DNA of 64,000 nucleotides, taken from positions 187,840-251,839 of the forward strand of contig JAHLWZ010000423.1 in the NCBI GenBank assembly GCA_020536535.1. Direction: 5' to 3'. Shown in pieces: positions 1-57,700 of the stretch. Numbering within the stretch: position 1 is the stretch's first letter; every line of letters starts with the position of its first letter. A model generated the notes under the pieces. It was not told the origin of the DNA and made no database searches. It saw only the letters and a list, made by a program, of their open reading frames with translations. Position numbers and translations under genes: made by a program. The DNA comes from Pelomyxa schiedti. Lineage: Eukaryota; Protista; Evosea.

Positions 1-2142
1 TTCCCAACTACTTGAAGTTTTGGATTTCTCTTTTGCAGCAAAGTGGACAGATAAACAATCCAGAATGCTGTCAAGTTGGGACATGGGAGTCCTTTTTTCA
101 AGCTCCAACAGAACAAGAAGCCTCAGAAAAAGCGAGGATGGTTGAGTGAAGTTGTTCTTGATGAATTGCACAGTGTGGACATCAGAAGATTGCACTATTT
201 GCCCTACAATGTGCTTATTTATAGCGCAAAAATCCTTCTTTTGTACGAGTACATCATCCACTGGACGTAGACGTGAAAAAACTTTGTGTCCAACTTTTGG
301 TGCAAGCTTTACGGCTTCCAAAGAAATTTGCCACGTCGTTGGGTAGAAGAGAACCCAGTCCCAGAGAAAGCCCAGAACGTCATTTATTCGATTTGGGAAC
401 TTCGGCAGAAATTTGTGTACGATAAATCTTAATGCCGAGATTTTGGCACCGGCTTCGAGGCTAGATTCCATCACCCTCCTGACATCCTTTAGCAATGTTC
501 CAGCCTCCACCAAATTGAGGTATGCAGGGATCTCAAATACTTCAGAGACAACACAGGGATCTTCATCAGCGATTCTCTCAGCAAAAATAGACTTCAGAGC
601 ATCCCTTGTGTCTATTGAAGAGATATTTACTTCTTTGATACTCTGAAGTGCTTTCAATCGGACTGTTGCGTCTGGGTGTCGTGCAGACACAATCAAGACA
701 TTTGGTAGCCCACCTGAACCACTTGGTTCTACGATCTGATGGACAGTACCAGCCAGAACTCTGTCTGCGAATTGTAAAATCTGGTCATTTTCAGCAATTA
801 GTCTTTTTAGCACTGCTGGTAGAGTCGTATCAAATTGAAGCTCGCGTTGAGAGAGGAACTTCATGCACTTGGCAATATTCACCTCGTCTAGTGAATGAAC
901 ATAAGAGAAGTAACAATAAGAAGTAAAAGAACACACATTCAGGGTGCATGTATAAGCTCAAGAGACTTTCTGTTAGCCACTCCATACTTGAGTGTGGTGG
1001 GGCAACTTTGAGAAGTCCCCAGAATACCTCCCATTCGGCAGTATGAGTATCTTTCTTTGGATCATTGAAAACCTTAAAGAGGGTAGCCAACACCACTTTG
1101 ATCAAGGGTTCTATGTAATATCCCTTGCTGCTAAAGAATTTAACTGCTTCACATAACTTGCTACCTTCCTTCTTAACCATGGTTTCCACGAAGGCATCTT
1201 CAAATATATGAAGACACTGATAGCGACACAAGTTGGCCAAGCACATGCATACGCCTTCACATTTCTCTGGGAAATAGCCAATAAAAATAGCCTCTAGCAC
1301 AGCATCAAGCATGGCGGTGCTGAGCTTCCATGAAGAAACAAGGACAGAAAGTATCATAAGAGATACAGTGTGAAATTGCATATCAGAGCTGGCAAGGCCA
1401 ACAAGAAGAGGTTTTGTGACGTCTTGTGCAATTGATGGAGATGACTGAACCGCCTCAAAGAAGAGAGCATAGTACAAAGATAAAAGTGCCTTATTTGTAA
1501 TCTCTGCCTGGATAGATTCCATAACGGCATCACATACGAAGCGCAGCAGGGCAGTAGTTCCTGTGCATTCTTTCACCAGTAAGTGCCTAGATACTGGTGA
1601 ACGTTTCCTAGCACAAGGGCTCAAAAATATCCACTTCGGTGGTAGTTGTAGTACTTGAAGTAGCTTCGCAAACGTAACTGTCTCGTGGTATGGCAGGGCA
1701 CACTTCATTAGTGCGTCCACGTCATAGATGTGGCTGGAGTAGTTCCTTAGCAAGTATTCCAGCACTTGAGTAGCCGACGAATCCATGAAATGGGGGGACA
1801 AAAGGGTTAGGAGTTTGGAAATTTCCCTCCCAAGTTTTGCGTTCTCCTTTTCAGTGTGCATTTGGCGCTCAAAACCAATTCCAGCGTCTGTAAATAGAGT
1901 CTCCTCGAACACTGCAAAGTGCTGGTCTTTGGCTATCAAATCCTCAAGGCCAGTTTTCCCCAGCCTTTTACCGTGTTATTGACATGAGCGAATTGGAGGG
2001 GAAAAAAGAACACCTACTTGTGGACAGTGGAAAGTGGCATTTTTTCTGCTTCTTGCGTGTCGAACAGAAGCGACACCGCGCCATAGAGCTTCGGCGTTCT
2101 TACATGTTCTCGTTGTCGGTCGATGGCCTCGCGGATAGACAT
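1..2142 (-). CDS. UTP10: U3 snoRNP protein UTP10/HEATR1, 5' part; multi-exon, continues off the left edge
   Basis: Exon 1 from ATG at 2142 reads MSIREAIDRQ...SLLFDTQEAEK. The next exon reads GLEDLIAKD...LLTLLSPHF...VLEYLLRNYSSHIYDVDALMKCALPYHETVTFAKLLQVL, matching the UTP10/HEATR1 N-terminal motifs (SLLFD..EA; LSP.F; EyL...y.ih.y..d.l..c.LPYHET). Confidence 0.9.
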
Positions 2143-2277
2143 TGTTAGGCCTTTACGATGTGGGCAGATTTAAACCCGTGCCGCAACACCCAGCACCACC
2201 AGATCTTGGATAATATAATAATTCGACGCAGGCAACTGCCATCAGATCAAAACCAAAAAATCTTTCCCGGTGTGAAC
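2143..2277. promoter_or_regulatory. Putative bidirectional promoter (135 bp) between UTP10 and the pLGIC-fusion gene
   Basis: Head-to-head start codons at 2142 (-) and 2278 (+). Function is inferred from position only. Confidence 0.45.
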
Positions 2278-5200
2278 ATGGCGACTGTGGATTCTCCCAT
2301 TCTTGAAAGAACATGGCGAGTATGCAAGGGAGCACTAGTGCTATCGATCTCCCTCCCCAGAGTCCAGCTTCCTCCAGTCAGAGCAGGGAAAACAACAACC
2401 GCTCCGTGAACATCACACGAAACCCTTTGGGTGCCGATTCCGTTCACCGACAGCGATGAAACGCCGCAACAACGCCAAGAAGCCCAACAAGCAACAACAA
2501 CAGCCCCAGGCACAACACGTTGGAGACGACGCCAAGGCCAACGCCGAGGAAGATCTCGCAGTGGTCGTCGACCCACACGACGGCGATGGCGTGGTGGTCG
2601 TAGGGACAACGACACCAAAGGGCACCCCCGACTCTCTCCGCGGTGACCACGACGCGAGGTCCGCAAATAGTCCCATAATCCTGCCCGCCGAGCAAGACAA
2701 TGGCGACGCCGACGATGTCGATGGGGAAGACAGAGACAAGGACGCTGGAACGAACAAACCCAAACCCAAGAGCAAGAACAAAAAGAGGAGCGTCGGCAAC
2801 AAGGGCTCTAAGAAAGTTGTGGGACAAACAATTGCCGACTCTGAAGTAGCGTCATCAGTGTCCCCTGGCGTTGAAGTTTCATCCTCGTCCTCTTTGCCGA
2901 CGTCACTCACAGCTTCCTCACCAATTACAGCAAATGCAAATACAAATACAAATACAAATGCAAATGCAAATGCAAGTACAAGTACAACTACCACAACTAC
3001 TACAACAAGTTGCACGTCATTCACCAAGCTAGACTCAAATGATTTGCTATTGGATGACGTGCTGAAGCCATCTGATGTCATTCATGTTAGGCTTGAGAAT
3101 TCTTCGAAGTGGTCCTGCTCTTCCACGTGAGCGCCTCTCTAACTCTATTACACTGTAACACCTTACTTCCTGTGGTTTTTTTCTTTCTTCTTCTCTAACT
3201 ATGCTGAAAAGTGACGGAACTGAAGTTAAATGTGTGGAGGCAATGACAGAATTTGTAATTCTGTATGGACTTTCTCCAGGGACAATCAAATTAAGTTGGA
3301 ATAAGGAGTGGTCACATTTCCTTGGCTTTGAAGCTCACAAGGAGGTTTCTCAAACGTTTTTATTTACTTTTCTGACTCGGTGGAAGGACTCTCCATTTTT
3401 CGTTCATGATGCTGAATTCCTAACTGCATCTTCGGACCTCATTCCAATCGTGCACAGTACTCCAAGCAAAGGGGAATTGATTGTGTCATTGGGAAGTGCC
3501 AAATTTCCTGGAACCTTTATTTCCAGTACGATTTTGGATAGAGGAGTACTGGATGTAACAAACAACATTATAAATGCTGCACACTTTAGTATGCACTTTG
3601 CCAGGGTATATTCTTCTCACCTTTTTTAGGGCTCTCTTTGAGTGTGTCCCACTTCAAAGATCTTGAAGGTGCAAATTCTCTTTATAAGAACATGCTAGAA
3701 TGGATAACCCCCACACTTACAACCTCCCACATACCACCTGAGAGTAGTAGACTGCTGCATACTCTTGAACACCTTCCTCTTTCTCGTTTATTCCTTCCTC
3801 TAAGGCACTACTTGGGTGACAGTATCCCGTTCTACCTTCACATGGAGCGAGTCGAGTATTACCATTTGTATTTGTCGAATGTTTTTAAGTCACCTTGACA
3901 GGCAAGAGCAGCTTTTTACACAAGCCCTGGAATTCATGGATCTTCACCCGGGATTATCGTTCCTCCATATAGGTTTAGCACAGGGTAGAATTCCTGTAAT
4001 AGTTTGCGCTCTCCTTGGAGTATGTTACTTGATTAGACTTGCCCATGTCTGCACTCATAACTCTTAAAGGGGCAACTTAATTACACTGCCTGGAATATTG
4101 ACAATGCACTAGAGAAACTCATAAAGTTTATTTCATTGCCTTTCACACTTTTAGGTCACTTCATTCAGGTATCATATTGGACAAATATCTCCCCACTATG
4201 GGCCACAGAATGTGCGAGTTGATTTACAAAACTGCTTCATGTTTGAACCAACCTCAGAAACACAATTTGATCGCGTGTTGATCTGTGGGAAGGCCCCACA
4301 GGCCAGATTCCATCAAATGTGTAAATTAATTAAACCTGGTGGTCTACTTGTGGTACGTAGTTTTCTTCTTTCTAATTGACTTTGTGTTTTTGGACTGACC
4401 ATTTTTACTTAGGGCTGCTTTGAAACCGCTTCAAAAGCCAAACTTGTGTTGGTGAAAAAGGCAATAGATGGCTCAATTAGCCGTGCCGCACTTCCATGTC
4501 CACTAGATTTAGATCCAAGTTCTGCTGTAGTCCCATTGGTAGCTCCACCAATGATATCTGAAGTAAAAGCAAGGGTAATTTTAGTTTCTATCAAATTTAT
4601 CTCACTGTATGCAGTTTTCGCGGGTGAAAGGAGACTTTTCTGATGAAGAAGGTAGGCTAAAGCGTTTTCTAACCCACCAATTTGTTTTCAGAGTTGAAAC
4701 AATGGCTCCTCTACATCAGTGATGCCTACGGAATTGAGCTGCCTGATTACTCAACAAAAATATTGGCTGCGGGATTTTCACTTTCTGTTATCAAGGAAGG
4801 TAAAATCTGAGAATCTTTTTCCCTTTATTTACTGCATTTTGTAGTTGGACTTGCTGAAGAAGACGTTGGTTGTCTTGGAATCCCTCAGTCACACTGTTCT
4901 GCCCTGAAATTCGCTATGGACAAATATGTCGAGTTCCAGAAAGCGTTGAGGGACGATACAAAAGGTGAAGTTCTTTGGTAACCCGACTTGACCCTGACAT
5001 TCATCATTTAGTTTCGTCACAGGAGATGATTGTGAAACCAACTCGTGTTAAAATTACCTTCACAAGGGTGGGTGTAGTGGAATCTGAGTTTGATGCAGAT
5101 GTAGACATTGTCCTAACTTGGAAGGATGAGATCGCTTGGCGAGAATTTGCCGTAATTTATTCTTTGATGGCTATGACATCAGGCTAATAAAACTTAGGCT

Positions 5201-6477
5201 GAGAAGAATCTTAATGCAGAAACTAGCACCCAGGCGGAACCTGTGCACATTGCCCTCTCTCAGCTTCATCCAATACCGCTGCTTGGGTTTCCAAACTCCA
5301 AGGGAGATGTTACTTTGACTTCTGAGGCAGCCTATGTTGTCCCACATACGGGAATGATTGAGTATCATGTTTCCTTCAGTGGTACATTTACTGAAATTAT
5401 GGAACTCCAAAAGTACTTCCTTGTCATTTTCTTTCTCCAATGACTCTCAATAGGTTTCCATTCGATAGACAGGCTAGTTTTTTGTTTACTCTTTTCCTCT
5501 GGCTAATAAATTACCACAGCTTCTACACTTAAATCTTCAGCATGACACTCGAAAACAGCCTGATTTGAGGGTTATCTGGGATCTTAAGGATTTGTTGGAA
5601 GAAAGTGTAAAACCCAGAAATGAAAAGTAAGTGGCTCATTCTTTGATTTTCCAATAAAATGCAATAGGGAAAACAATAAGATTCTAGAGCTGGTGTCTGC
5701 TGACCGGGAATGGGCTCGAGCAGAAGCAAAAATAGACAAAGAACCACCAACTGCTGAAGAGCCAAGAGAGATTGAACAACTAATCCTTGTGGCTCAAGCT
5801 GAAAGTAAACCCCTCCTTTTTAATTGTGTGATTCAACCCTTTTGCCAGGATATTCCTCCTACTTCATGTGGAATATTGTCTTTATGATGTTCCTAATCGT
5901 TGTCATGTCATTTTTGACTTTCACTATACCTGCTGATGATGGTTCTGGCCGACTTGGCTTGAACCTCACACTAATGCTGACTGCTGTTGCCTACAAGGTA
6001 AACTATTGTTAGTTTTTACTGGTAACTAATGAGGTTCAGTATGTCATTGCCGGCTACCTTCCCAAAACAACCTACCTCACTCTACTGGATAAATATGTGC
6101 TTGTGGGATTCATTGTCCTAGCTTCCGTAATATGTGAAAACTCTGCGGCCTCCGTAGCGGAGGATTCTGCAGCACCCTTCTTTGACAAAGTGGCCATTCT
6201 CACCCTCATCCCTGTATGTATTACCTTTTGCACTAAAAAACCACAACCCCCCAACAAACCAACCAAATTAATACGCACCAAGCTGTGGTTGCTATTGCAC
6301 GTGGGGATTGTGATAGGCTGTGCATTCGACTTCTTCAGGCAAAGCTGGGCAGAAGTAGAGGCCTCACAAGAGACCACAGAACCTATTTCCGGACCTGTTT
6401 ACAAGGCAGATAGCACGATTCCTCCTGTTGCTGTTTCTCTGATCGCCGCTTTAGCTGTAAAAAAGGGTGCTAGGTAA
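2278..6477 (+). CDS. Multi-exon Cys-less pentameric ligand-gated ion channel (Pro-loop receptor) with N-terminal low-complexity region, PCMT/PCMTD-like methyltransferase-fold domain and SAM-like domain
   Basis: Spliced exons give, in order: ELIVSLGSAKF...LDRG; QALEFMDLHPGLSFLHIG; QNCF...QFDRVLICG...KLIKPGGLLV (PCMT-like); ELKQWLL...EEDVGCLGIP (SAM-like); FDADVDIVLTWKD; GMIEYHVSFSGTFTEIMELQK/FPFDRQ (Pro-loop); YFMWNIVFMMFLIVVMSFLTF (M1); RLGLNLTLMLTAVAYK (M2); YLPKTTYLTLLDKYVLVG (M3); and a hydrophobic M4. Confidence 0.72.
2930..3008 (+). repeat. Coding microsatellite (GCAAAT/ACAAAT/ACAAGT/ACT units) encoding ANANTNTN...TTTT
   Basis: Directly visible hexamer and trimer repeats. Confidence 0.85.
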
Positions 6478-6588
6478 TTGATTTTGTGATCCTTTTACCA
6501 CACCGACACTTTCTTTCTATCATCTATCTCTATTGTATTGGGAAAAGAAACAAAAAAAAACCAGTAACTACAAAAGAAGCTGTATTAC

Positions 6589-9500
6589 TTACAAAATAGA
6601 GATTGTGTCATCCACAAGAAACAATAATACCTTGTCTGCAAGGTGAGATACAGTCTTTTCCAGTGCTTCACTTCTTTGTAGCTCCCAGCTTTTTATCCCT
6701 TTCTTGCACAAGTCCGTGACAGGCTTTTTGGGGTTTACTTTTGCTTGTAGGACGCCAGTCAAGAAAGTCTGTAGCTGGTTGTTGATGCTGATAGATGTGA
6801 CTCCCATTTGCGTGGAGAGTGGCACAGAGGAACGGAAGAAGTTCCGTTCAAGGGGGGATGGTACAGGTTGTCTGAAGTGCTCCAGTCCTTCAACAACGAG
6901 GTCATGTTGCTAAAATAGGCTTTTAGGTGGCTACTATATCATTTGTAAAATACCAAGTGATGGTATGCATGCTTGTACATCTCCAACTGCATGTCGGCGC
7001 CTGTGGATTTTTCGGCATCATGGAAGTGCCTAGTCTCTAAAGATGAGAGGTCTGCTAGTGATATAGGGCAGCCAACACTTCCTTCTGGAAAAATCATCTT
7101 TTGTGCATAGGAGACAGTCCGCGATACAGAGAGCTCCAAAGTGGGAGGGTCACCTTCCACTGCCCTCCGGGCTGCTTCTAGATCATAATGGTATGGAGGA
7201 TTTGAGGGTTCTGGTAGTTTTGGAATTGGGTTGCTGTCAATGGGAATGGGAGTAGCTTCGGTATCGTGAATAGTGTTCGGCTGTGCAGTTTGAGAAACTA
7301 TCTCTGAAGCAGCATATTCTGTTGTTAGGCACTCCTCGAGGAGTTCAAAGAATATGTAAGAGGATACACTTTCAGAATAGTGGAAGTGGGTTTGACAGAG
7401 CCGGGTCTCGACAAGACCCTATAGGACAGAAGTGAGTACGAATATTAACCTTCAGCTAAAAAGTAGCTCAAAAAAAAAAACCTGCATTTCTGTTAGAAAC
7501 GATCGATACTGACGCCAATGTGTAAGTGCATTGTGCCTGAACAGGCACCTCTTCAAGCAATCAATGAGATGCCTGTGTTCTTTGACCACTTTTTCTGGAG
7601 GAGTTGCTGTGACGGGGGACTCGATGGCCGAAGAAACCGTGGAATCAGTCCCATTGTATGGAGTGAATTCTGAAAGAAGAAGCTGCAAAATGTACTCAAC
7701 AACGTTATCATACTCTGAAGCATGTTCCAGCGAAAAATGAATAGTGATAGCATCATCCAGTAAGAGCTCAAGAGCCCATTGGACAATATTTTCTGGTTCA
7801 ACAGACTTGACTTCTTCTACATACCGTTAATCAACGGCGCGTTGTGAGAACTCAACCTGGTGTCTTTGTTCCTGGTGTAGCTACTTCGTCAATAAGATGA
7901 TTGAGAATACTCTCTGCAAGAGCATCCACCTGACAATCCAATGAACTCCCTTCCTGATTCATTGTGTCCAAATGGAATAGATCGTCAAGCAGTTTTTGGA
8001 ATATGGAGCATGTAAGGATGTTGCACATATCTTCAGAATTTGTGGTGTTCTGTGATGAATTCAGCCAAAAATTGGAATACAGGAAGCTCAGGAACATCAG
8101 AGTTAATTAAATTGCTAGGGCTTTGGCTCACAACGTTCGGTTGGTTCTGTGGAAGAGAAGGAGCCAGCCAATTACTGAGTGCTTCATTAAGAAGGTAGGA
8201 CAGAATGTCTGTTATGAGAGGATCCACCATGGAAAGAGCGAATTGGTTTTCTATAGTTTGTAACTGCTCGCAAGACTCTACAGCTTCTTGGGAGACTTGT
8301 GTTAACTGTTCGTGCTCAGGTTTGTGGAAAGTAGTTTCCTCATGGTTTGAGAAATCATCGCAAATAAGTTGCTCTGTGATGCCTTCTTTGTACTGTTTTT
8401 GTGAGAAATCCTCCTCACTTGGCTTGTCAATACTTTCAGTGAGCTCGGCATTTAGCTCTTGAGGGCTTGTCAAGGGCTCTAAATTTGCAAGTTCGTTTTG
8501 GGAAGTTTCCTCTCCAGTATGGGTTGCCTCATCACATATCAAAATTTCTTGTGTGTATTCTGGAGAGTATTCAGTTGATTCCTCCAATAACTGTTCCCCA
8601 GGTTGGACCTCGACCTCTCCTTCACCAACTTGGCTGTGGGGTTCTTCAATTCCCACCGCAAGAGTTTCTTCTTCCACAATTTCATGAATCTCCTGACTCC
8701 CCTCTAGGCAGATATCTGCTTTTTCTGTTAAATACTGGGCTTGCACGGTTGTAGAACTTGGATCTGCATGTGAGTCCTGGGGTTGCCCCTCTGAGAGATC
8801 ACAAGTTCTATCGTCTGGAAGGTCTTCTTCAGGGTTGATCACACCCTTTGTAGGGGTGTCAATGTTCTCTTGAATGTTGTCACAAATTTCATTGATACAA
8901 TTCTCTTCGGGGTTGTCTTTTCCATCTTTTTGAGGGGACTGAATGTCCTCTTGAGGGAGACTCTCGAAAACATCCTGAAGATGATCGGTACTCTGATGTG
9001 ACCCCACATCTTCTTGACAATCTCCTTGCGACTCTTCTTGGGTGTGAATCTGTTCACCTACTGAAAGGTCGTAATCATTCTCTGTGCCTTGCGGGATACT
9101 TTCCAAGATTCCCAGAGGGCCGCAGTTTGAGTGATTTATGGAGTTATTTTCCTCATCTTCTTGAGGTAATTCAGAGAGCTCTTCTTCGGAGTTTACTTGT
9201 TCAGGAATGGTCTCAAGAATGCTGTTTTGTGCAACTTGATTATCTTGAACATCTTCAACACACAACGTTTCTTGTATAGATTTGTTTTCAGAATCACCCT
9301 CACACTGTGGAGAAGGAAGGTCTTCACCCACATTTGGGTAAGGATCGTCATGAGACTGTGTGCTACTGTTGGCAGAGATTCTGAGAGAATTGACTTCCTC
9401 GGTCCACTCCTGTGAAGAGTCATTTGGAGGCTCAATGCACTCTGATGGTTCCTGGGAATCGTGGTGTAAGTAGTTTTGTTCAGTGTCGAGGTTATCAGTA

Positions 9501-12500
9501 GCATTGGAAATTTCGATACTGTGATCCGGGGAAATGAGAACTTCAATAGAGGGAGAGTAATCACTTGAGTGAAGATTCTCTTCTACGTCATTTGGTCCAC
9601 CAGTGGCAGATACTTGTGATAGTTCGGTTGTATCTTGGATTTCTGGAATCGGGGTAGTTTCCCTCATATCGGGAACTTCCAGGTTATGGAAGTCATCTGT
9701 TGCCTCTGGGACTTCAGTTGTATCCGGTACTTCTGGGATGGGAGAAGTATCTCGTGCATCGGGAACTACCAAACCAAGTGGATTATTTTCATTTGTATTG
9801 GGCACTTCTTGTGCGTTGGGAGTATTTGATGTATCTTCTGGATTGTTCAGGCACATATCCACAATTTCTGGACTACCAGTATTTACTAAAGGCTCGCTAG
9901 AAAATACTGTTTCACAGTTCTCATTCTGTGCGTTTTCATTGTCACGTGGCTCTGGCTCTTGTTGAAAGTCAAATTCTTCCAGAATTTGGTCTACTTCCAC
10001 TGGTCCTATGTTACTGTCTCCATACTCCACGTCATGAAAATGCGATGGGAGTTCCTTGGCAAATTCCTTGCTTGTGCTTTTGTTTGCTATCATATTTTCA
10101 TTTTCTATGACCTCAACAACCTCAAGTTGCTCTCTTACAGAAGCTTCAGTCGGGGGTTGAGGGTGGTCTTCTTTGGTGATCTGTTTACTTGAGGCACTTG
10201 GCTCCTCGAATGATGGTGTTTCCTTCGTCCTCAAGCCACTTTCAGAACTTTTAACGCCTTTAATGCCAGCCCTTTCAGTTTCTGCACAGCCACGAGGAAT
10301 CTTTTCTGCGGTACTGTTTATCTCATTTACATTCACAGAGGCTGCTGCCTCGTGCTGGTCGTGCTGGTTTGTCAAGAACGTCTAGAGGGAAAATTAGGTA
10401 AGTTACTGAATCGGAGTACCTTTTCCAGCCGATCCAAAAGAAGTATTCTGCGAAAATATGTATCAGCCAGAAGGTTTGCCTTGTCTCTTTCCAATTGATA
10501 ACTTGAGGAGACAAGTGCTAGTTTTAGGGACTGTGAAAAAGGTGAACAGATGGAAATTGACTAAGGCGTACGTTAGAGGGTTGCGCAGAGTCAGAATGCT
10601 CAAGAGTTTGCAGATAGGCACGGGCTTGTTGTAAAAGGTTTTGTTCTGTCAGTTGCATGCTACTCGGAAGCACAGTACCATAAGCAACTTGGCCTTGTGT
10701 CAACTGGCACACTGAATGTAAGGAAACTTCTTAAATATGTGTTTACATTTGATATGAAAGTTTTAGCCCATTCAATTTCAGTCTCACGCTCAAAGTGTGT
10801 TTCTGGAGTAGGAATTAATGTTCCTCCCTGAGCGGTGTTTTCAGCACGCAATTGTATAGAAGTCTGGGGCTCAAGGCCAAAACTGAAACAGTAAGTAAGG
10901 ATTTCAAGTTTTTCGATTTGAGCGACGAACGTTGTTTGAGAGCTGCTATCATGTGATTTCAAATTTCTTGCAGCTGTATTCACTCCTGGCTCGGGGGGGC
11001 GATATTGACTGAGTTGAAAGTCTGGTAAAGCTATTTTGTCCTTTTCTACTTGCAATTTGGAGCAATCGCGGTCTTCGGGCAAATAGCTTTGTTCATTTTG
11101 TAAAACCTCCGGAGGTTTTATCTGGGGAATAACGGGAATAGTGTATGAAACATCCTCATTCAATCCTGGTGTAGATTGCTGAACGCGCTTTGGAGGTTCA
11201 AGGATCTTGGTTTTGCTCTCCAGTTTAATTGTAGGGACAGTATTGGTAGGGAGAGGGGACTGCTCTGCAGGAGGACTACTAGTAACGGAACTTGAAAGAG
11301 CAGCAAATACATTTATTGGAGTGGAGAGTGAACTTTCCCCTGAACTGGGGGCTTCTGTATTTCTATTTTGGAAAACAGTACTGGACTGTGGCATGGCTTC
11401 TGAGGGTCCTCTTTGCCGCTGCAGTGCCCGAATTTCATCTTCAATAAGTTTTTGGGTAAGTGCTTGATTTTGAAGGACACTATTTAACGCCGTAGACTCC
11501 ACCATTTGTGAGACATGAAAAGCGTGAGTACTAGAAAGTACGGAAATCTGGTGTTCGTCATGTCTTCAATTTGAATTATTAAGAGGAGATGTACTTGTTT
11601 CAGTGCTTCCTCACATAATTTTATATGGTCCACATCTGAGGGCCACAGAGAACCGGCAGAAGGCGGAGGAATGTTATTGTGGTTTGGATGTACTTGAGGT
11701 TGTGCGTGTTCGGTAGTTACATTCCTGCTATGACATTTGCCAACGACAGTGTGAACGGGCCTTTCTGTGTAGTGGGAACAATGTACGTGTGGGTGCCTGT
11801 GATGATGTGAAACCATCTTTCTGGAATGTTTTCTCTGTGAGGTCATGACTTCTCGTTCGCATGTCCGTTGGGAGAGGGTTGCTTCTACCAGCTTGGATGG
11901 GGATGATAATTCTGTTGATTCCTCAAGGGTGGGCTCTTCGAGGGGTTGAGTATCCCCTGCATGCACTACTCCAGTATTGGATACTAGGAGCGGAATGATG
12001 CTGTATGGGTCGGCTAGGTGTGAGCTGTAGGAAGGCACATCAATTTGTTTTGCGGTTCGTTTTTTGTTGTATCGTCTCCATGCCCTTTGAATTATAACGG
12101 CTGCTCTCCATTCGATTTGGAGGGATGACCAAGTGAACTTTGGGCTTGAAGGTAATTGTTTGTTACTTGGGAGAAGGGGTTGAGCTTTGGTCGAAGAATG
12201 ACTCACTTCACAAGTATCCTTAATTGGGTTAATTCTTTCATTTAGTTTGAGCTCGTCACACAGAGGTCTAGGAGCGGTGCACAGCGGTACTACATTTGCT
12301 GACCAAGGAGGCCAAGGTGGTAAAGGAAGCGGGAGTGGCCCATTAGATTTTCGTGCTTCGAAACTGGGATTTGTTGGAGGCTGCGAAGGGGTTTTAGGAT
12401 CAAGTCGAGGGCGATGAACTGTGGCCTCAGGTGGATATTTTTGGGACTTGTGGTTTGAACTGGGTTGACTGGTTTGCTGGACACCATTGGCAGATACACC

Positions 12501-22268: not shown

Positions 22269-23926
22269 TTACCTACGGCCGCCTCTTCCTCTTCCTCCAC
22301 CACCTCTCCCTCCTCGCCGTACTCCCCCACTGTGACCACCTCCTCTCCTGCCTCCTCCCATTCTTCCTCCTCCCCCCATTCTCCTTCCCCCACCTCCCAT
22401 CCTCCTTCCGCCGCCCCCCATTCTCCTTCCCCCGCCGCCCATTCTTCCCCCTCGGCCCCCCCTTGCTCCACCCTTGGTCTTGCCAAGAAGAGAGCCCCAG
22501 GTCTCTTTCTTTTCAGTTGCGGGAATTCTAGCTGAGACTTTCAAGTTTAATGCCGACGACTGCGGCGGCGGAGACACTGACGGAGGTGGCGGAGATGCGG
22601 CCGGTGGAGGAATGTTTTCCCAAGCCAGGATAGATGTCACACACTTTTTCTCGCCGTTCCCCTCTGCTGCCGGTTTGGTAGTGGCTTCAGGTTTCTTTGT
22701 GGTAAATGTAGTACTGGCGGTTAGACCGCCACCTTGCCGTAGTCCAACTCCACCTATTCTTCCCAGTCCACCTCCACCCATTCTTCCCCGGCCACCTGCT
22801 CCCATTCTTCCCATGCCACCCCCACTTCTTTGTGGTTGCGACCGCATGCCGCCACCAGAAGGGCTCCCTCGAGCAAAGCTGGAGCCAGATCCACCAAAGG
22901 AACCTCCCCCGGAACGAGTGGAGTTCAGAGAACCCCACTCTTCAGGAACTTCTTCAAGTGGTTGATGGGAATCACTTGGGGTCGGTTTAGGTTGCGGTGC
23001 CTTTGGAGGCAGTACACCTGCCGCTTGCTTTCGTGCCATAGCAGTGAAAATGTCGGTATTCTCCTCTTTACCTGTGCCCACTAATTTAGCGCTCATGGCA
23101 GCGCCACTCCCTACACTGTTGGTACTTGCCGGGGCATTCTTTGTAAGTTTACCGAGAAGGTGCTCAGCCATGTTATTCATAACAGGTTGTCCACTACGTG
23201 TTTTCTGGTTGAGCTTTCTGGTAACTTCTTGCCGTTGCTTAATATTTTGCTTGACCTGAGCTTCATGCTCCTCCTTTTCTAAGCGCTCCTCAAACTTCTC
23301 TCTCAGTTCATGAGCGTGCTGTGCATGGTATTTGCGTAGTGACCAAGGCAGATGTGCAGCATTTTTCATGTCTTCCTTTTTTTGTGCGTCATCTGTGCTT
23401 TCCTCTGGCTCATCGGCGGCAGGTTTCTCCAGCGCAAGCGCGAGAGCAACCGGATCAACTTTGACTGGAACAGCTGGGGACTTTGTTTGCGACACAGTTT
23501 GCCGTGCCTTCTTGGCTGGTGGTTGACCATTTACTGGAGCAGCTTCTTTGGGTGGCGTCTTCTTATCTGCGGGTTCGTCAGCATTTTCCGGGGTGTCCCA
23601 TGTCGCCTCATCGAGGGAAATTTTTCCAGAGAAGAACTGTCAATACGTTAAAGCTAGTGGGTGTATGTTTTTAATAGTAAAACCTTGTCGTAAAACCCGT
23701 CAGACGAAGCGTTAGTGGCAGCGTACTTGCCCTTGTACTTCTCGTAGATCCGCTTGGTCGCTCCCTCCACGTCCTCTTGTCTTTGTTTTCCTGTTGTTGT
23801 TTCGATAAACAGAAAAACTCGGGTGAGTGGCAGTCCGGGCAATTAATAAAAAGATTGTCATTGACATGTACCTATGGACTTGTACTCGTTGCGGCGGCGA
23901 CCTTCCTTGCGTTGCGGGGTCCACAT
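22269..23926 (-). CDS. rRNA-processing FYV7/CCDC59(TAP26)-like protein with long Gly/Arg (RGG)-rich C-terminal tail
   Basis: EERLEKEEHE...RQEVTRKLNQKTRSGQPVMNNMAEHLLGKL matches the family motif K(L)xxKT(R/K)xGQP...(E)HLL.KI. RGG and RRMGGGG repeats follow. The stop may coincide with a splice donor (AG|GTAAGT at about 22271). Confidence 0.65.
22370..22465 (-). repeat. About 21-nt coding tandem repeat (RRMGGGG x about 4)
   Basis: Translation GRMGGGGRRMGGGGRRMGGGGRRMGGGGRMGGG. Confidence 0.75.
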
Positions 23927-33997: not shown

Positions 33998-35716
33998 TTA
34001 GACATCCAGTACAGAGAGAACACAAAACAAACGAAAATAAAATATTGAGTTGTTGGTGGATGTAGTTAGAATAAGTTGGGTAATGTGATAACATAAGGCG
34101 TCGCTTGTTATATGTACTGGAGAAATGAGGGACGGCATACCAGGATGAGGAGGGAGCACTCGTCCATGACGTAATACACCATTTACATCATATCTTGGAG
34201 GCTGTGCAATGGATGGCCGCAGTACGGCAGCTGCAGCTGCTGCCCGCAGATACGGCGGTACACCTGCTCCCTGGGGCATTACATTTGCAGGAGTTGAGAG
34301 CAACGATTGAGGCTGTGGTGGTGGTGGGATGGGAATGAAAGGCTTTGACCCAAGTGGAGCGGGAGGGAGTTTTGCCCTGGCGGCAGACACTGCCGCTAAC
34401 GCAGGTGTGGGTGGTATAAATGGAAGGTTTCCTTGTGGGTGAGGGAGAAGTCGTGGGAAAGGAATTTGAGGGGACCCTAAAGGACTAGGAGGTGGAATTG
34501 ATGGAATAAGCGGTGCTCCACGGCCTGGGGAAGGGGTAAGTGTGGGCAGGGAAAGAGTGGCAGTTGGCAGAGGCCCTCGCCCTGAGAGTGGAAATTTGCA
34601 CTGCATTTGAAATGAACTGTTGTTGACAAGTCCTGGTGCATTACCCAGGAGAGGCAACAATGACCATGATGGCATGGATCCGGCTTGTAGTAACTGTGCT
34701 GATGGCGATGTGAATGGTCTTATATGGTTGATTGGCCCAGGGAGAAGGGAAGAGGAGTTGGAGAGAAGTTGGAGTGTGTTGAGAGCCCCAGGTGGAGGGG
34801 GTAAAAACCTGGATGGTGGAGGGACTGGAATTGGAATGAGTGGTCTTTTTAGAGTGGAAGGAATAAGGGGTGGTTGCTGTGGAGATGGAATAAGTGGTGG
34901 GCTAGGGACCAATGAACCGCTTTTCAACTTTGAATTCAGTAGGGCACTTGGTTTTAGGGGAATTGCTGGCTTTGATGAAGATACGAGTTGAAGTGGCTGC
35001 TGGCAAATTGGCAATGATTGAAGTGGGTTGAGCTTGGCAATTGGGAGAATTCTATTCGGTTCGTCTAGAATCCCTATCAAACAGTGAATGGGTGGTAGAG
35101 TGCAACTTAAAGTAAAGGTACACAGACCTAATTGAGGTTGTCTGAGAAGTAACGGTGATTGGGGCACCTGACTGTGGTCCTGGTACACCTGTTGCAGAAG
35201 AGGAGGGGCACAAAGAGGTACCATAGGCGAAACAGAGCCTTGCATGCGCTGCTGCCGCTGCCGCTGTTGTTGCAGAACATATTGCAATTCGCTTTGGTTA
35301 TGCAACAACAGCTGCTGCCTATCCAACTCAGCGGCGGCGCTCAAATAGTCCTCCCACTGCTGCCACTGCGCCGCGTACTCCGATTCCCTCTGCTGCTGTT
35401 GCAATGCCGCGTTCGCCGCCACAACTGCTGCCGCCGCCGCCGCTGCTTCCGAGGTTTGAATTTGCATTTGCATTTGCATTTGCTGTTGTCGCTGGTGCGG
35501 TGGTTGAGCGGCGGTCAAGATCTCGTCACGACGCTGCAGTAATGCCGCGGATTGTTTGTTTTGGTGGTGTTGCTGCTGCAGCTGTTCTAAGATCTCAGCG
35601 GGAATGTAGCTCGAGTGCTGGGCATCTACGTCGAGAAGTTGTTGGTAGTATGCGAGTATGGCTTCGTCGTATGTTTGTGCTTGTTGCTGTTGCTGGTACT
35701 CGTATGACCCCAGCAT
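33998..35716 (-). CDS. Gln-rich/Pro-rich low-complexity hypothetical protein
   Basis: 572-aa ORF with poly-Q/poly-A N-terminal half and Pro-rich C-terminal half, probably containing in-frame introns. No recognisable domain. Confidence 0.5.
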   Translation of the reverse strand: MLGSYEYQQQQQAQTYDEAILAYYQQLLDVDAQHSSYIPAEILEQLQQQHHQNKQSAALLQRRDEILTAAQPPHQRQQQMQMQMQIQTSEAAAAAAAVVAANAALQQQQRESEYAAQWQQWEDYLSAAAELDRQQLLLHNQSELQYVLQQQRQRQQRMQGSVSPMVPLCAPPLLQQVYQDHSQVPQSPLLLRQPQLGLCTFTLSCTLPPIHCLIGILDEPNRILPIAKLNPLQSLPICQQPLQLVSSSKPAIPLKPSALLNSKLKSGSLVPSPPLIPSPQQPPLIPSTLKRPLIPIPVPPPSRFLPPPPGALNTLQLLSNSSSLLPGPINHIRPFTSPSAQLLQAGSMPSWSLLPLLGNAPGLVNNSSFQMQCKFPLSGRGPLPTATLSLPTLTPSPGRGAPLIPSIPPPSPLGSPQIPFPRLLPHPQGNLPFIPPTPALAAVSAARAKLPPAPLGSKPFIPIPPPPQPQSLLSTPANVMPQGAGVPPYLRAAAAAAVLRPSIAQPPRYDVNGVLRHGRVLPPHPGMPSLISPVHITSDALCYHITQLILTTSTNNSIFYFRLFCVLSVLDV

Positions 35717-54751: not shown

Positions 54752-57700
54752 ATGGGGAACGCCACGTCGCAAGACATCAACCACGAGGGTGAGCGGCACC
54801 GCGACGGCGACGGGGTGAAGCAAGACTACGGGAAGGCCTTGGCCCTGTTCAAACGAGCCGCGGCGGGGGGCAGCGGCGAGGCCCTAAACAACCTCGCTCT
54901 GATGTACCTCAACGGGCAGGGCGTGCCCAGCGACCCCTCCCGCGCCGCGGCCCTCTTCCAGGGCGCCTGCGACGCGGGCTGCCTCGACGCGATGTACCAC
55001 CTCGCCTGCCGCCACGCGGAGGCGGGGGCCATGGCCGCCGCCGCGGCCCTCGTGTGGCGGGCCTCGTGCTGCGGCGCCGGGCCCGAGGCCGTGCGCGCCC
55101 ACTCCCGCAGGGTCTACGACGCCGTGGGGGGCCGCGACCCGGGGCGGTGCGCGGAGCTGCTTCGGCAGGTGCTGGACGGCGGCGGGGGCTGCGCAGGGGA
55201 AACCGCCTCGCTCGCGGCGTGCTACCTCGCGGCGCTGCACCTGGCGGGAGGGGGCAAGGGCGGGGTGCCCAGGGACGGGGCGCGGGCCGCGGCGCTGCTG
55301 CAGCGGGCCGTGGACGGGGGCAGCGCCGAGGCCATGAACGCCCTGGGGATATTGTACGAGCGGGGGAGCCGGGGCTACGGAATCCCGCCGGAGATCGACA
55401 GGGCGGTGGGGCTCTACCAGAGGGCGGTGGATTCCGGAAGCACTTCCGCGCTGATCAGCCTCGCGTGGTGCTACAGGGATGGGCTGGGAGTGCAGCGAGA
55501 TGTGGGCAAGGCGGTGTCATTGTTTCAGACCGCCGTGGACCGCGGCGACCTGTGGGCTCTCAATGGCCTTGGGTGGTGCTACACATGTGGGGGTGAGGGC
55601 GTGAAGAGGGACTACAACACAGCGGCATCGCTGTTTCAGAGGGCTGCTGATGCCAGTTGCCCTGGGACTGGCCTGGGGTGGTGCTTACAACGTGGGTGGG
55701 GTGTGGAAAGGTGCACAATCAAAGCGGCTTCACTTTATGAAAAGGGTGTTTCTGCTGGAGAGCAGGGTTCTGTGTGGGGTGGTGGCGGGGAGAGGGGAGG
55801 AAGGGGACCCCTCGCAAAACCGGGTTTCACAGTGTTTCTGGGTTTTTGTTTGGAAAATGGTGAAGGTCTGGCTCAGGACACAGCCAAAGCACTTTCACTT
55901 TACAACGCGGCTGCAGAAAATGGAGAGTCCTTTGCCTTTGCCCACCTAGCCCTGAACTTGTTGCAAGAAGGTGGTAGCAGAGAAGCCAGTGCGGCAGTGT
56001 CACTTCTCAGGAGGGGTGTTGACTTTGGAGACCCCAAGGCGATGTTTCACCTTGGGATGTGCTTCAAAGATGGTGTTGGCGTTTCTCAAGATAAGTCTGA
56101 GGCATTTCACCTGCTCCAAAGGGCTGCAGGCCTCGGACATAAAGAGCCTTCAAAAATCCTCGCAACTCTGCCTCCACCATGCCTTCCGCCAAAACCATCC
56201 AAGACAGCGCCTAAACTTACTCCATGCACATCCACACAGGAGGTACTACAAATTCAAGAGCAGTCAATTCGAACCAAAACAACATCACCTGCGGCACCAC
56301 AGTTGCTATCAACACGTACACCCACTCCAACAACACAAAACGCAGAGACTGCAACTAAGGGAGCAGACACAACTTCCTCAAATCCTTCCAAACCCTCAAT
56401 TTTGGCCACACTTGCGCAAGATATTCTAAGCAGAGCACAAGAAGGCGATAATGACAATGACAGTGCCAACCCACAGAGTCAAATATCCAACATGGAACAA
56501 GTATGTCTCTGGCTTGGGTCCCTTGGCATCGATGAAGAGAGTTTGAATGTCATCAAAAACAATAAACTTGTGAACTATTCAGTGCAACAGTTGTGCAATC
56601 TTGGCATGGTTGGTGATGCAGAACTAGGGAAACTCATTGTGGAGGAGGTGCAAGCAAACCTGGCAAACCAACAAGAAGAAGAACCCCCACGTCAGCGGGA
56701 ATTTTTTGGTTCCACACAGCCACTTGCTGAGATGAATTACAAGTGCTTTGCATTCGTTGTTGGGAACGGATCATATTCTCAGTGTCCACTCACAAACACC
56801 ATCAACGATGCGCAGGCGATTGCTCAGGTTTATCTCTCAAACTTGGTTTTCTCCATTTTGTTCACTTTCTTTCACCAGCTACTCGAAACTAGATGCAAGT
56901 TCGAAGTCACATGCCACACAAACTTTCCAACACTCAAAGAATTCATCATTGCCCTGGAGGAATTCAAGAAAAAACTTAAGCAAGCCAAAAAGGCAAACAA
57001 TAAGGTAACCAATAAAGAAAATCACATCCCAAGTCATCTCATCCTGTTCTCCATTTGTCAGGTAGCAAGCATTTTCTACTTTGCCGGACATGGAAGGCAA
57101 CTGAAGGGGCACAACTTCCTGCTAATGACCAGTGACGAGTCTGCCTTCACCGAAAAAAATTTTGAGCAACTGAGGATTGCAGCACCCATGCTTGGGTCTG
57201 TTTTGGATGGAATCAAGAACTACTCTGATTTGACAATTGGAATTATGGATGCTTGCCGCCAATCTGATAGAAATGACGGACCCGAGGAGTTCCGGGTATT
57301 CCCCCTTTCATTTTTATTCACAACCAGCATGCCCACTCACTAACACAATTTTCAGACACGTGGATTTGGGCCAAAAGGAGGAGAACATTTGACTAAAGAG
57401 GATTTTCCTGTTGGCTGCATTGTTGTCTACCCCACTGGCCCAGGTTCGTTTCTTTTCTAAGTTTTCTCACACCTCCCACCTAATTAATAATATTTGTACA
57501 GGGGAGCTGACGGGTGACTCTTGCACTATCCCTCACAGGAAGGATCATGGATTTTTCACTGGGTGTTTTCTTGAGGGTGTGTTCCCCTTTCCAAAGAAGA
57601 AAAAAAATCAACACTACCCAAAGCAATGGATCTCGCCAGACCAGGGACACCCTTCACTGATATTATTGATGATATAATTGTGATGGTCCAGGGATTGTCT

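Follow-up and report, generated by a model that had tools for sequence, protein, structure and literature searches.

Ion channels of the pentameric ligand-gated type (pLGICs) are the textbook receptors for ligands outside the cell. How, then, is such a channel to be understood when its ligand-binding domain follows directly on ~670 residues of cytosolic-type modules, with no signal peptide ahead of them, as is the case at a locus of the anaerobic amoeba Pelomyxa schiedti? The gene in question occupies 2456-6477 of the forward strand of a 64,000 nucleotide (nt) stretch of DNA, which we refer to as the window, and whose sequence is identical to GenBank contig JAHLWZ010000423.1 (assembly GCA_020536535.1) at positions 187,840 to 251,839. 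The encoded protein begins with a tail that is probably disordered; a domain rich in beta strands, a Rossmann fold like that of PCMT/PCMTD, a sterile alpha motif (SAM)-like helical bundle and a Cys-less pLGIC follow in that order. The reading that we favour, and hold to be probably correct, is that this is one conserved gene encoding a multidomain Cys-less (Pro-loop) pLGIC subunit, the N-terminal half of which would be cytosolic and the channel of which would be inverted in the membrane.

Gene structure and reality of the fusion

The gene comprises 19 exons and 18 introns and encodes 1050 amino acids (aa) plus a stop, according to a splice model that was built by hand from the three forward frames of 2200-6600 and then compared with the relatives P0001 and P0047. 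The exons, all on the plus strand, are 2456-3126, 3212-3344, 3387-3588, 3630-3855, 3902-4019, 4070-4125 and 4169-4352 (exons 1-7), 4413-4574, 4615-4651, 4692-4799, 4845-4964, 5012-5151 and 5198-5412 (exons 8-13), and 5454-5472, 5520-5626, 5668-5804, 5849-5997, 6040-6213 and 6283-6477 (exons 14-19). Relatives were retrieved by a library search that used the stop-free stretch 6040-6474 as the query and returned P0001 (935 aa, 76% identity over the query); a follow-up search then gave P0047, a P. schiedti GenBank protein of 1050 aa that carries the automatic label "acetylcholine receptor subunit beta". The spliced translation is exactly identical to P0047, so that the single frame first proposed from the DNA letters, running from a methyltransferase-like domain through a helical part into a full pLGIC, is borne out.

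The introns are 40-85 nt long (median 44.5). The original prediction took them to be GT-AG throughout, which holds for 17 of the 18 and fails for the intron at 5473-5519, a GC-AG intron directly after the FPFDRQ codons whose junction was confirmed by paralogue alignment. In the published P. schiedti genome there are 7.43 introns per gene and 1.59% of introns are GC-AG (PMC8887013), and the short introns and single GC-AG intron of the channel gene are consistent with that description. Two boundaries in the prediction had to be moved. The ATG at 2278, where the gene had been thought to begin, was rejected as the start codon, since it opens only a short open reading frame (ORF) that stops at 2409, and coding begins at 2456; the proposed 29-nt intron at 4127-4155 leads into a frame with an early stop, the real intron being 4126-4168 (43 nt), which fits all paralogues. 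The junction given as 4964-5011 was placed correctly, with the intron at 4965-5011.

Comparison with P0001 and P0047 also led us to reject an acceptor at 3889 in favour of 3901, and to splice 3345-3386, which had been left in. This last intron (42 nt) and the one at 6214-6282 (69 nt) are in frame, stop-free and easily overlooked; retained, they would cause no frameshift and would add 14 aa to the N-terminal beta-rich domain and 23 aa inside the fourth transmembrane helix (M4), respectively, the second of which would probably disrupt M4. Pfam searches with single-exon translations gave only noise, the pieces being too short. The leader contains two ATG-initiated upstream ORFs on the plus strand, one of 43 codons (2278-2409) and one of 48 codons (2313-2459), and because the latter ends within the ATGA that also holds the main start codon, translation of the channel may be under the control of these ORFs.

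It is conceivable that a methyltransferase-like/SAM-like protein and a channel are mainly separate products here, with the long fusion rare or absent and the channel made from an internal promoter or start, for example at the Met of QEMIVKP, where the ligand-binding domain begins. Other eukaryotes do have short relatives (330-400 aa) that lack extensions. Three further observations pull in the same direction and against the fusion. Transcripts P0004, P0038 and P0050 of Pelomyxa sp. JSP, all labelled complete, have their first residues within the SAM-like part or beyond it, so that shorter isoforms may exist; the transcript evidence comes from Pelomyxa sp. JSP rather than from RNA-seq of the window locus; and the GenBank model of P0047 is an automatic product of Augustus, PASA and EVM, which were run on P. 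schiedti with transcriptome data (PMC8887013).

The fusion is nevertheless real and conserved, and not an artefact of the gene model, because four lines of evidence agree. Five P. schiedti paralogues on separate contigs (P0047, P0001, P0005, P0007 and P0048) have a collinear architecture at 33-65% identity overall. The Trinity transcript P0040 from Pelomyxa sp. JSP (594 aa) runs from methyltransferase motif I through the SAM-like part to the end of the channel and thus crosses both junctions; P0004 and P0038 from the same organism contain the helical part together with the channel. The intron that joins the SAM-like part to the ligand-binding domain (4965-5011) has only 47 nt, which is too short for a terminator plus a promoter, and the parts on its two sides are in frame and free of stops. 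Finally, identity to P0001 is 51% in the beta-rich N-domain, 63% in the methyltransferase-like domain, 79% in the SAM-like bundle and 81% in the channel, showing each part of the protein to be under constraint, with the SAM-like part conserved to the same degree as the channel. The structural model described below also places the first strand (beta1) of the channel six residues past the last SAM-like helix. We therefore regard mainly separate products as very improbable. A search for the same architecture among relatives, which had been proposed as a check, is answered by the five paralogues and P0040, and the channel gene is part of an expansion specific to Pelomyxa.

When long relatives were sought outside Pelomyxa with a word-based search, the sole result was P0049 (Logan, 846 aa), a relative from the same clade with a different architecture. 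Its channel is N-terminal, and after it stands a C-terminal extension of ~300 aa with a weak thioredoxin match (E=4.9e-4), an extension that would share the side of the ligand-binding domain.

Domains of the encoded protein

The C-terminal part is a complete pLGIC, with a ligand-binding ('extracellular') domain at aa 673-882 (4964-5859) and a transmembrane domain at 5860-6327. A profile of the Pelomyxa channels searched against the PDB matched ELIC (E=1.3e-19), followed by GLIC, sTeLIC, GABA-A beta3 and DeCLIC. The AlphaFold2 (AF2) model of the channel, with a predicted local distance difference test score (pLDDT) of 83.9, has a beta-sandwich and four helices (293-316, 322-344, 355-379 and 385-412, model numbering), and Foldseek again found ELIC with this model (E=1.4e-19). 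Hydropathy, AF2 and the profile together place the transmembrane helices at 5860-5928 (M1), 5953-6048 (M2, spliced), 6076-6141 (M3) and 6190-6327 (M4, spliced); M2 aligns to that of ELIC, with the 9' Leu conserved, and only 16 aa, of acidic character, form the M3-M4 loop. The other channel motifs quoted in the original prediction were likewise located, namely the beta1-2 motif FDADVDIVLTWKD at 5089-5127 and the Pro-loop MELQKFPFDRQ at 5399-5472, which is split by the intron 5413-5453 so that FPFDRQ lies at 5454-5472. FPFDRQ is invariant in all seven aligned Pelomyxa channel sequences, and the P, D and Q of the Pro-loop in 34/34 sequences of the surrounding clade. The claim that the channel is Cys-less also stands: residues 690-900 of our first model, which cover nearly the whole ligand-binding domain, contain no Cys and hence no Cys-x13-Cys disulfide loop of the Cys-loop receptors, and the domain would appear to require no disulfide.

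With single sequences, Pfam scores the ligand-binding domain at 19.1 bits, below the cut-off of 26, and Neur_chan_memb at 26.6 bits against 28.1 in P0047, the latter family passing in P0005, P0007 and P0048; scores near or below the gathering score indicate that the channel family is divergent. The automatic names of P0047, P0007 and P0048 ('acetylcholine receptor subunit beta', 'GABA receptor subunit gamma-3') are misleading, since they suggest an orthology to animal Cys-loop receptors that finds no support in the sequences. After M4 the clade alignment picks out FFRQSWAEVEASQE (6331-6372), which belongs to a pattern F..SW..V...Q(E/D) found in most of the close clade that lacks signal peptides and absent from more distant matches; it may mark the clade and serve to dock onto the ligand-binding domain. 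The protein ends in a hydrophobic or amphipathic helix, PPVAVSLIAALAVKKGAR (6421-6474), of low pLDDT in AF2, which falls short of the length of a normal transmembrane helix, is common to P0001 and partly to P0038, and is not present in P0005 or P0007.

Immediately before the channel lies the SAM-like five-helix bundle (aa 589-672, 4627-4963), recognised by AF2 and by profile. Its helices span 6-21, 28-34, 39-45, 49-53 and 59-81 in model numbering, with the channel beta1 starting at 88, and means of pLDDT over blocks of 10 residues are 78-95 across the helices. The last helix, which is also the longest, ends six residues before beta1, and the block means stay at 70-95 over this junction. The profile of the bundle matched the Caskin-1 tandem SAM in the PDB (E=3.3e-5) and, weakly, Eph SAMs. 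Counting against this assignment, no Pfam SAM family, neither SAM_1 nor SAM_2, was matched in the seven members examined, and we consider the identification as SAM-like reasonable, not proven. A match of the same profile to IcmE/DotG was dismissed, since no single matched stretch passed alone, a behaviour typical of scores that repeats or compositional bias produce.

At the N-terminus, residues 1-204 (2456-3067) are of low complexity, probably disordered and not conserved among the paralogues, and include an Asn/Ala/Thr-rich run encoded by a microsatellite in exon 1, (CAAATA/CAAATG)x10, at 2931-2991. They are followed by a conserved beta-rich N-domain at ~aa 245-340 (3273-3643), for which AF2 gives 7-8 strands with pLDDT block means of 56-84; a search for its relatives outside Pelomyxa gave nothing in Pfam and only chance-level profile matches in the PDB (HIV gp120, E ~0.2).

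Between the N-domain and the bundle is a class I methyltransferase fold of PCMT/PCMTD type (aa 346-588, 3659-4626), identified by profile and by Foldseek. The profile matched PCMTD1 (9oma_A, E=1.7e-5) and the archaeal protein isoaspartyl methyltransferases (PIMTs) 1vbf and 1jg1, so that the profile searches named beforehand as a check on the two folds return PCMTD1 for this domain and ELIC for the channel. The top 17 Foldseek matches are all isoaspartyl methyltransferases, from human, archaea and bacteria, with E down to 8e-10 and target-normalised TM-scores of 0.42-0.70, PCMTD1 being at rank 13. It speaks against the assignment that the AF2 model used is of moderate confidence (pLDDT 61, six-sequence alignment). 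Pfam PCMT (PF01135) is the best, though sub-threshold, match in several paralogues: it scores 11.4 bits in the window protein against a gathering score of 20.3, while the one paralogue score reported, 19.0 bits (E=0.0013), is again below the cut-off; the best paralogue E-value is 0.00041.

Motif I of this fold is degenerate. It reads GLAQG in place of GSGTG (3972-3986), as had been noticed in the translation, and the strand after it ends in WNID (4091-4102), the counterpart of PCMTD1 E112 in the alignment being Asn. The acidic residue reported as missing after motif I is indeed absent from the window protein, and is kept as Asp in P0005, P0007, P0048 and P0040. Human PCMTD1 is itself a non-catalytic PCMT fold that binds S-adenosylmethionine (AdoMet) and isoaspartyl peptides, and five AdoMet-contacting positions have been named in it (PMC12590147). 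Three of these five, N86, T91 and E112, align to H, Q and N in the window protein, all non-conservative replacements; T and D are retained in other paralogues. On the strength of these residues and of GLAQG, the domain of the window protein is probably a non-catalytic pseudoenzyme.

The original prediction had gone one step further in proposing that the domain senses AdoMet, S-adenosylhomocysteine (AdoHcy) or isoaspartyl peptides and so gates the channel, and a working enzyme would be a variant of the same idea. The specifically PIMT-like fold fits it, as does the binding of AdoMet and isoaspartyl peptides by the non-catalytic PCMTD1; P0007 and P0040 retain GTG and the Asp after motif I, and residual AdoMet binding in some paralogues is possible to judge from these residues. 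Yet motif I is degenerate in different ways among the paralogues, none of which has a full GxGxG, and all of them stay below the Pfam PCMT gathering score, while the profile alignment is restricted to PCMTD1 residues 70-193 and leaves the substrate region before motif I unaligned. For the window paralogue the proposal is further weakened because three of the five PCMTD1 AdoMet positions are replaced and GxGxG has become GxAxG, and we regard an enzyme or sensor of this kind as doubtful. Our preferred reading is thus of a pseudoenzyme module carried by a channel.

Membrane orientation and the surrounding clade

On which side of the membrane do these modules lie? Our test for a signal peptide was a hydropathy scan, in which the maximum 19-residue hydropathy within the first 60 residues is 0.9; the prediction that none is present therefore stands, and before M1 there is no hydrophobic segment except the Rossmann beta1/alphaA of the methyltransferase fold. 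There is also no space for a hidden signal-peptide exon upstream, since the 5' part of a divergent UTP10/HEATR1 gene (830-2142, minus strand, with U3snoRNP10 and BP28CT domains and a 2144-aa product) stands head-to-head with the channel gene across an intergenic region of only ~310 nt. On the other side, the next minus-strand gene ends 112 nt downstream. From the lack of a signal peptide it was originally suggested that topology or location may be atypical. An atypical orientation is supported; an internal membrane is possible and is not required by the evidence, which addresses orientation and not which membrane is involved.

The same feature extends to the surrounding clade of ~30 sequences, which includes Pelomyxa, Diphylleia and many uncultured protists. 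No signal-peptide-like hydrophobic run precedes beta1 in any of the ~25 members of the close clade with an aligned N-terminus, and the stretch upstream of beta1 has 7-150 residues, rising to as many as 800 in the long forms of Pelomyxa. More distant matches have typical signal-sequence starts. In one clade member, P0030 (Logan SRR24204719, 512 aa), the ligand-binding domain is immediately preceded by a PH domain (Pfam E=2.7e-11); the gene is an intronless ORF at L001:5001-6539 on a eukaryotic contig, where RICTOR is its neighbour. PH is a cytosolic module, and the families that the methyltransferase-like and SAM-like folds of the Pelomyxa protein resemble are known as cytosolic too. Elsewhere in the clade, two signal-peptide-less pLGIC genes stand in tandem on a metagenome contig (L003:286-2750), beside a split Peptidase_M18 gene.

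The loop charges are those that the positive-inside rule predicts for a cytosolic ligand-binding domain. Among 31 non-redundant members, Lys and Arg are commoner on the ligand-binding side in 28, with means of 4.68 against 2.16 on the other side and net charges of +0.19 and -2.52, respectively; the M1-M2/M3-M4 side has acidic loops. The absence of a signal peptide, the cytosolic type of the PH, methyltransferase-like and SAM-like modules, the loop charges, a ligand-binding domain that appears to need no disulfide and the lack of space for an upstream exon together lead us to propose that the channels of this clade enter the membrane N-in and keep their ligand-binding domains on the cytosolic side, which we find on balance slightly the better supported view. 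Against it must be set that sequence logic is its sole basis, and that the charge test is weak because the flanks compared are unequal (~39 against 25 residues) and the signal-peptide-bearing outgroup is small and of mixed charge pattern.

The conventional alternative is that the ligand-binding domain and the modules before it are extracellular or luminal, having been delivered there by an unrecognised signal or by unconventional translocation. To our knowledge, the ligand-binding domain lies outside the cytoplasm in every characterised pLGIC. The accessory N-terminal domain of DeCLIC also sits on the ligand-binding side (PMC9897478), and a hydropathy scan is all that our signal-peptide test comprises. 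Such a topology would, however, oblige ~680 residues of folded domains to cross a membrane without a signal peptide, in a close clade in which no member has one and in a gene where no upstream exon is possible; it would put the PH domain of P0030 and two further folds of cytosolic type on the wrong side, and the charge bias is the opposite of that expected. We therefore think the conventional topology unlikely.

If the N-in orientation is correct, the N-terminal half and the ligand-binding domain would stay in the cytoplasm and M1 would insert N-in, inverted with respect to animal and bacterial pLGICs, and a cytosolic cue would make the channel pass ions through the plasma membrane or through an endomembrane. 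In the predicted pentamer, the ligand-binding ring, the M2-M3 loop and the post-M4 motif SW..V...Q would face the cytosol, and five SAM-like bundles with five pseudo-PCMT/beta-domain units would form a crown over the ligand-binding ring, with a role in regulating or scaffolding gating that would parallel in function that of the DeCLIC N-terminal domain. The M1-M2 mouth is acidic (ADDGSGR, with PEDGGDR in paralogues) and M2 resembles that of ELIC, which would suggest cation conduction. Extended to the clade, the idea would be that the whole eukaryotic group senses the cytosol and comprises the first pLGICs gated from inside, and that this orientation allowed lineage-specific fusions, with PH in one case and with the pseudo-PCMT and SAM-like crown in Pelomyxa; for this wider proposal we see the case as evenly poised. 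Pelomyxa hosts prokaryotic endosymbionts (PMC10579272), from which one may speculate about a role of the channel at symbiont-containing vacuoles.

Window context and comparison with known systems

Away from the channel gene, the window contains an uninterrupted ORF of 863 aa at 54752-57343 (plus strand) that encodes seven Sel1 repeats (E=1.9e-54) and, after them, a Peptidase_C14 domain of caspase type (E=2e-8). The minus-strand ORF at 22272-23495 contains an rRNA_processing domain (PF08524, E=7.6e-11). Several further long ORFs, among them 8036-10375 and 34001-35716, have no Pfam match, and tRNA and Rfam scans of the window gave no matches.

Cys-less protist pLGICs have been catalogued by Jaiteh et al. 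2016 (PMC4795631), in which signal peptides, N-terminal domains and Amoebozoa are not mentioned as far as a term search shows. Fusions of pLGICs to methyltransferase, SAM or PH domains, or a cytosolic ligand-binding domain, were not found in the literature searched. The suggestion that the architecture was previously unknown thus holds as far as that literature goes, which contains no description of either architecture or topology; as a sequence the protein was not new, since it is in GenBank as one of five paralogues, all public under automatic names. In practical terms the work exposes misleading database names in this amoeba and offers compact disulfide-free channels for structural work.

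One parallel in domain arrangement is P0030, which falls in the same channel clade, has no signal peptide and carries a cytosolic-type module directly N-terminal to the ligand-binding domain; it differs from the Pelomyxa protein in that the module is PH, the protein has 512 aa and the gene is intronless. The SAM-like bundle shares the ~80-residue five-helix form of SAM domains such as those of Caskin-1 and EphA2, and differs in its extended last helix, which ends six residues before the channel beta1. We know of no other context in which a SAM domain abuts the ligand-binding domain of a channel.

The methyltransferase-like domain has the same PIMT-type Rossmann fold as PCMTD1 and PCMT1 and, like PCMTD1, is probably a non-catalytic module in a larger machine (PMC12590147). 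It differs from both in that motif I and, in the window paralogue, the acidic residue after it are lost. Its alignment to PCMTD1 stops at residue 193 of the latter, so that no sign of a SOCS/Cul-box emerged from the search; whereas PCMTD1 acts in the context of a ubiquitin-ligase adaptor, the Pelomyxa domain is fused to an ion channel. It would be the second case, after PCMTD1, of an isoaspartyl-methyltransferase fold reused non-catalytically.

DeCLIC, from Desulfofustis, is presented (PMC9897478) as the sole member of the family with an extra N-terminal domain and a solved structure. It likewise has a large modulatory N-terminal domain before the ligand-binding domain, and its structure 9ftg is among the sequence and fold matches of the Pelomyxa channel. 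Its N-terminal domain is described as periplasmic and calcium-binding, whereas the Pelomyxa modules are PCMT-like, SAM-like and a beta domain and are predicted to be cytosolic. The Pelomyxa protein would thus be a eukaryotic counterpart to DeCLIC, the single structurally known accessory-domain pLGIC.

With ELIC, GLIC, sTeLIC and the protist Pro-loop pLGICs, the channel itself shares the beta-sandwich, the Cys-free FPFDxQ Pro-loop, the helices M1-M4, the short M3-M4 loop and the 9' Leu, and ELIC is its best match by both sequence profile and fold. The Pelomyxa protein departs from all of these in the absence of a signal peptide, the ~670 extra N-terminal residues, the post-M4 SW..V...Q motif and the acidic M3-M4 loop, and its channel is predicted to have the opposite orientation in the membrane. 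If that prediction is true, this conserved and expanded subfamily would show the same pentameric machine turned round as an intracellular sensor.

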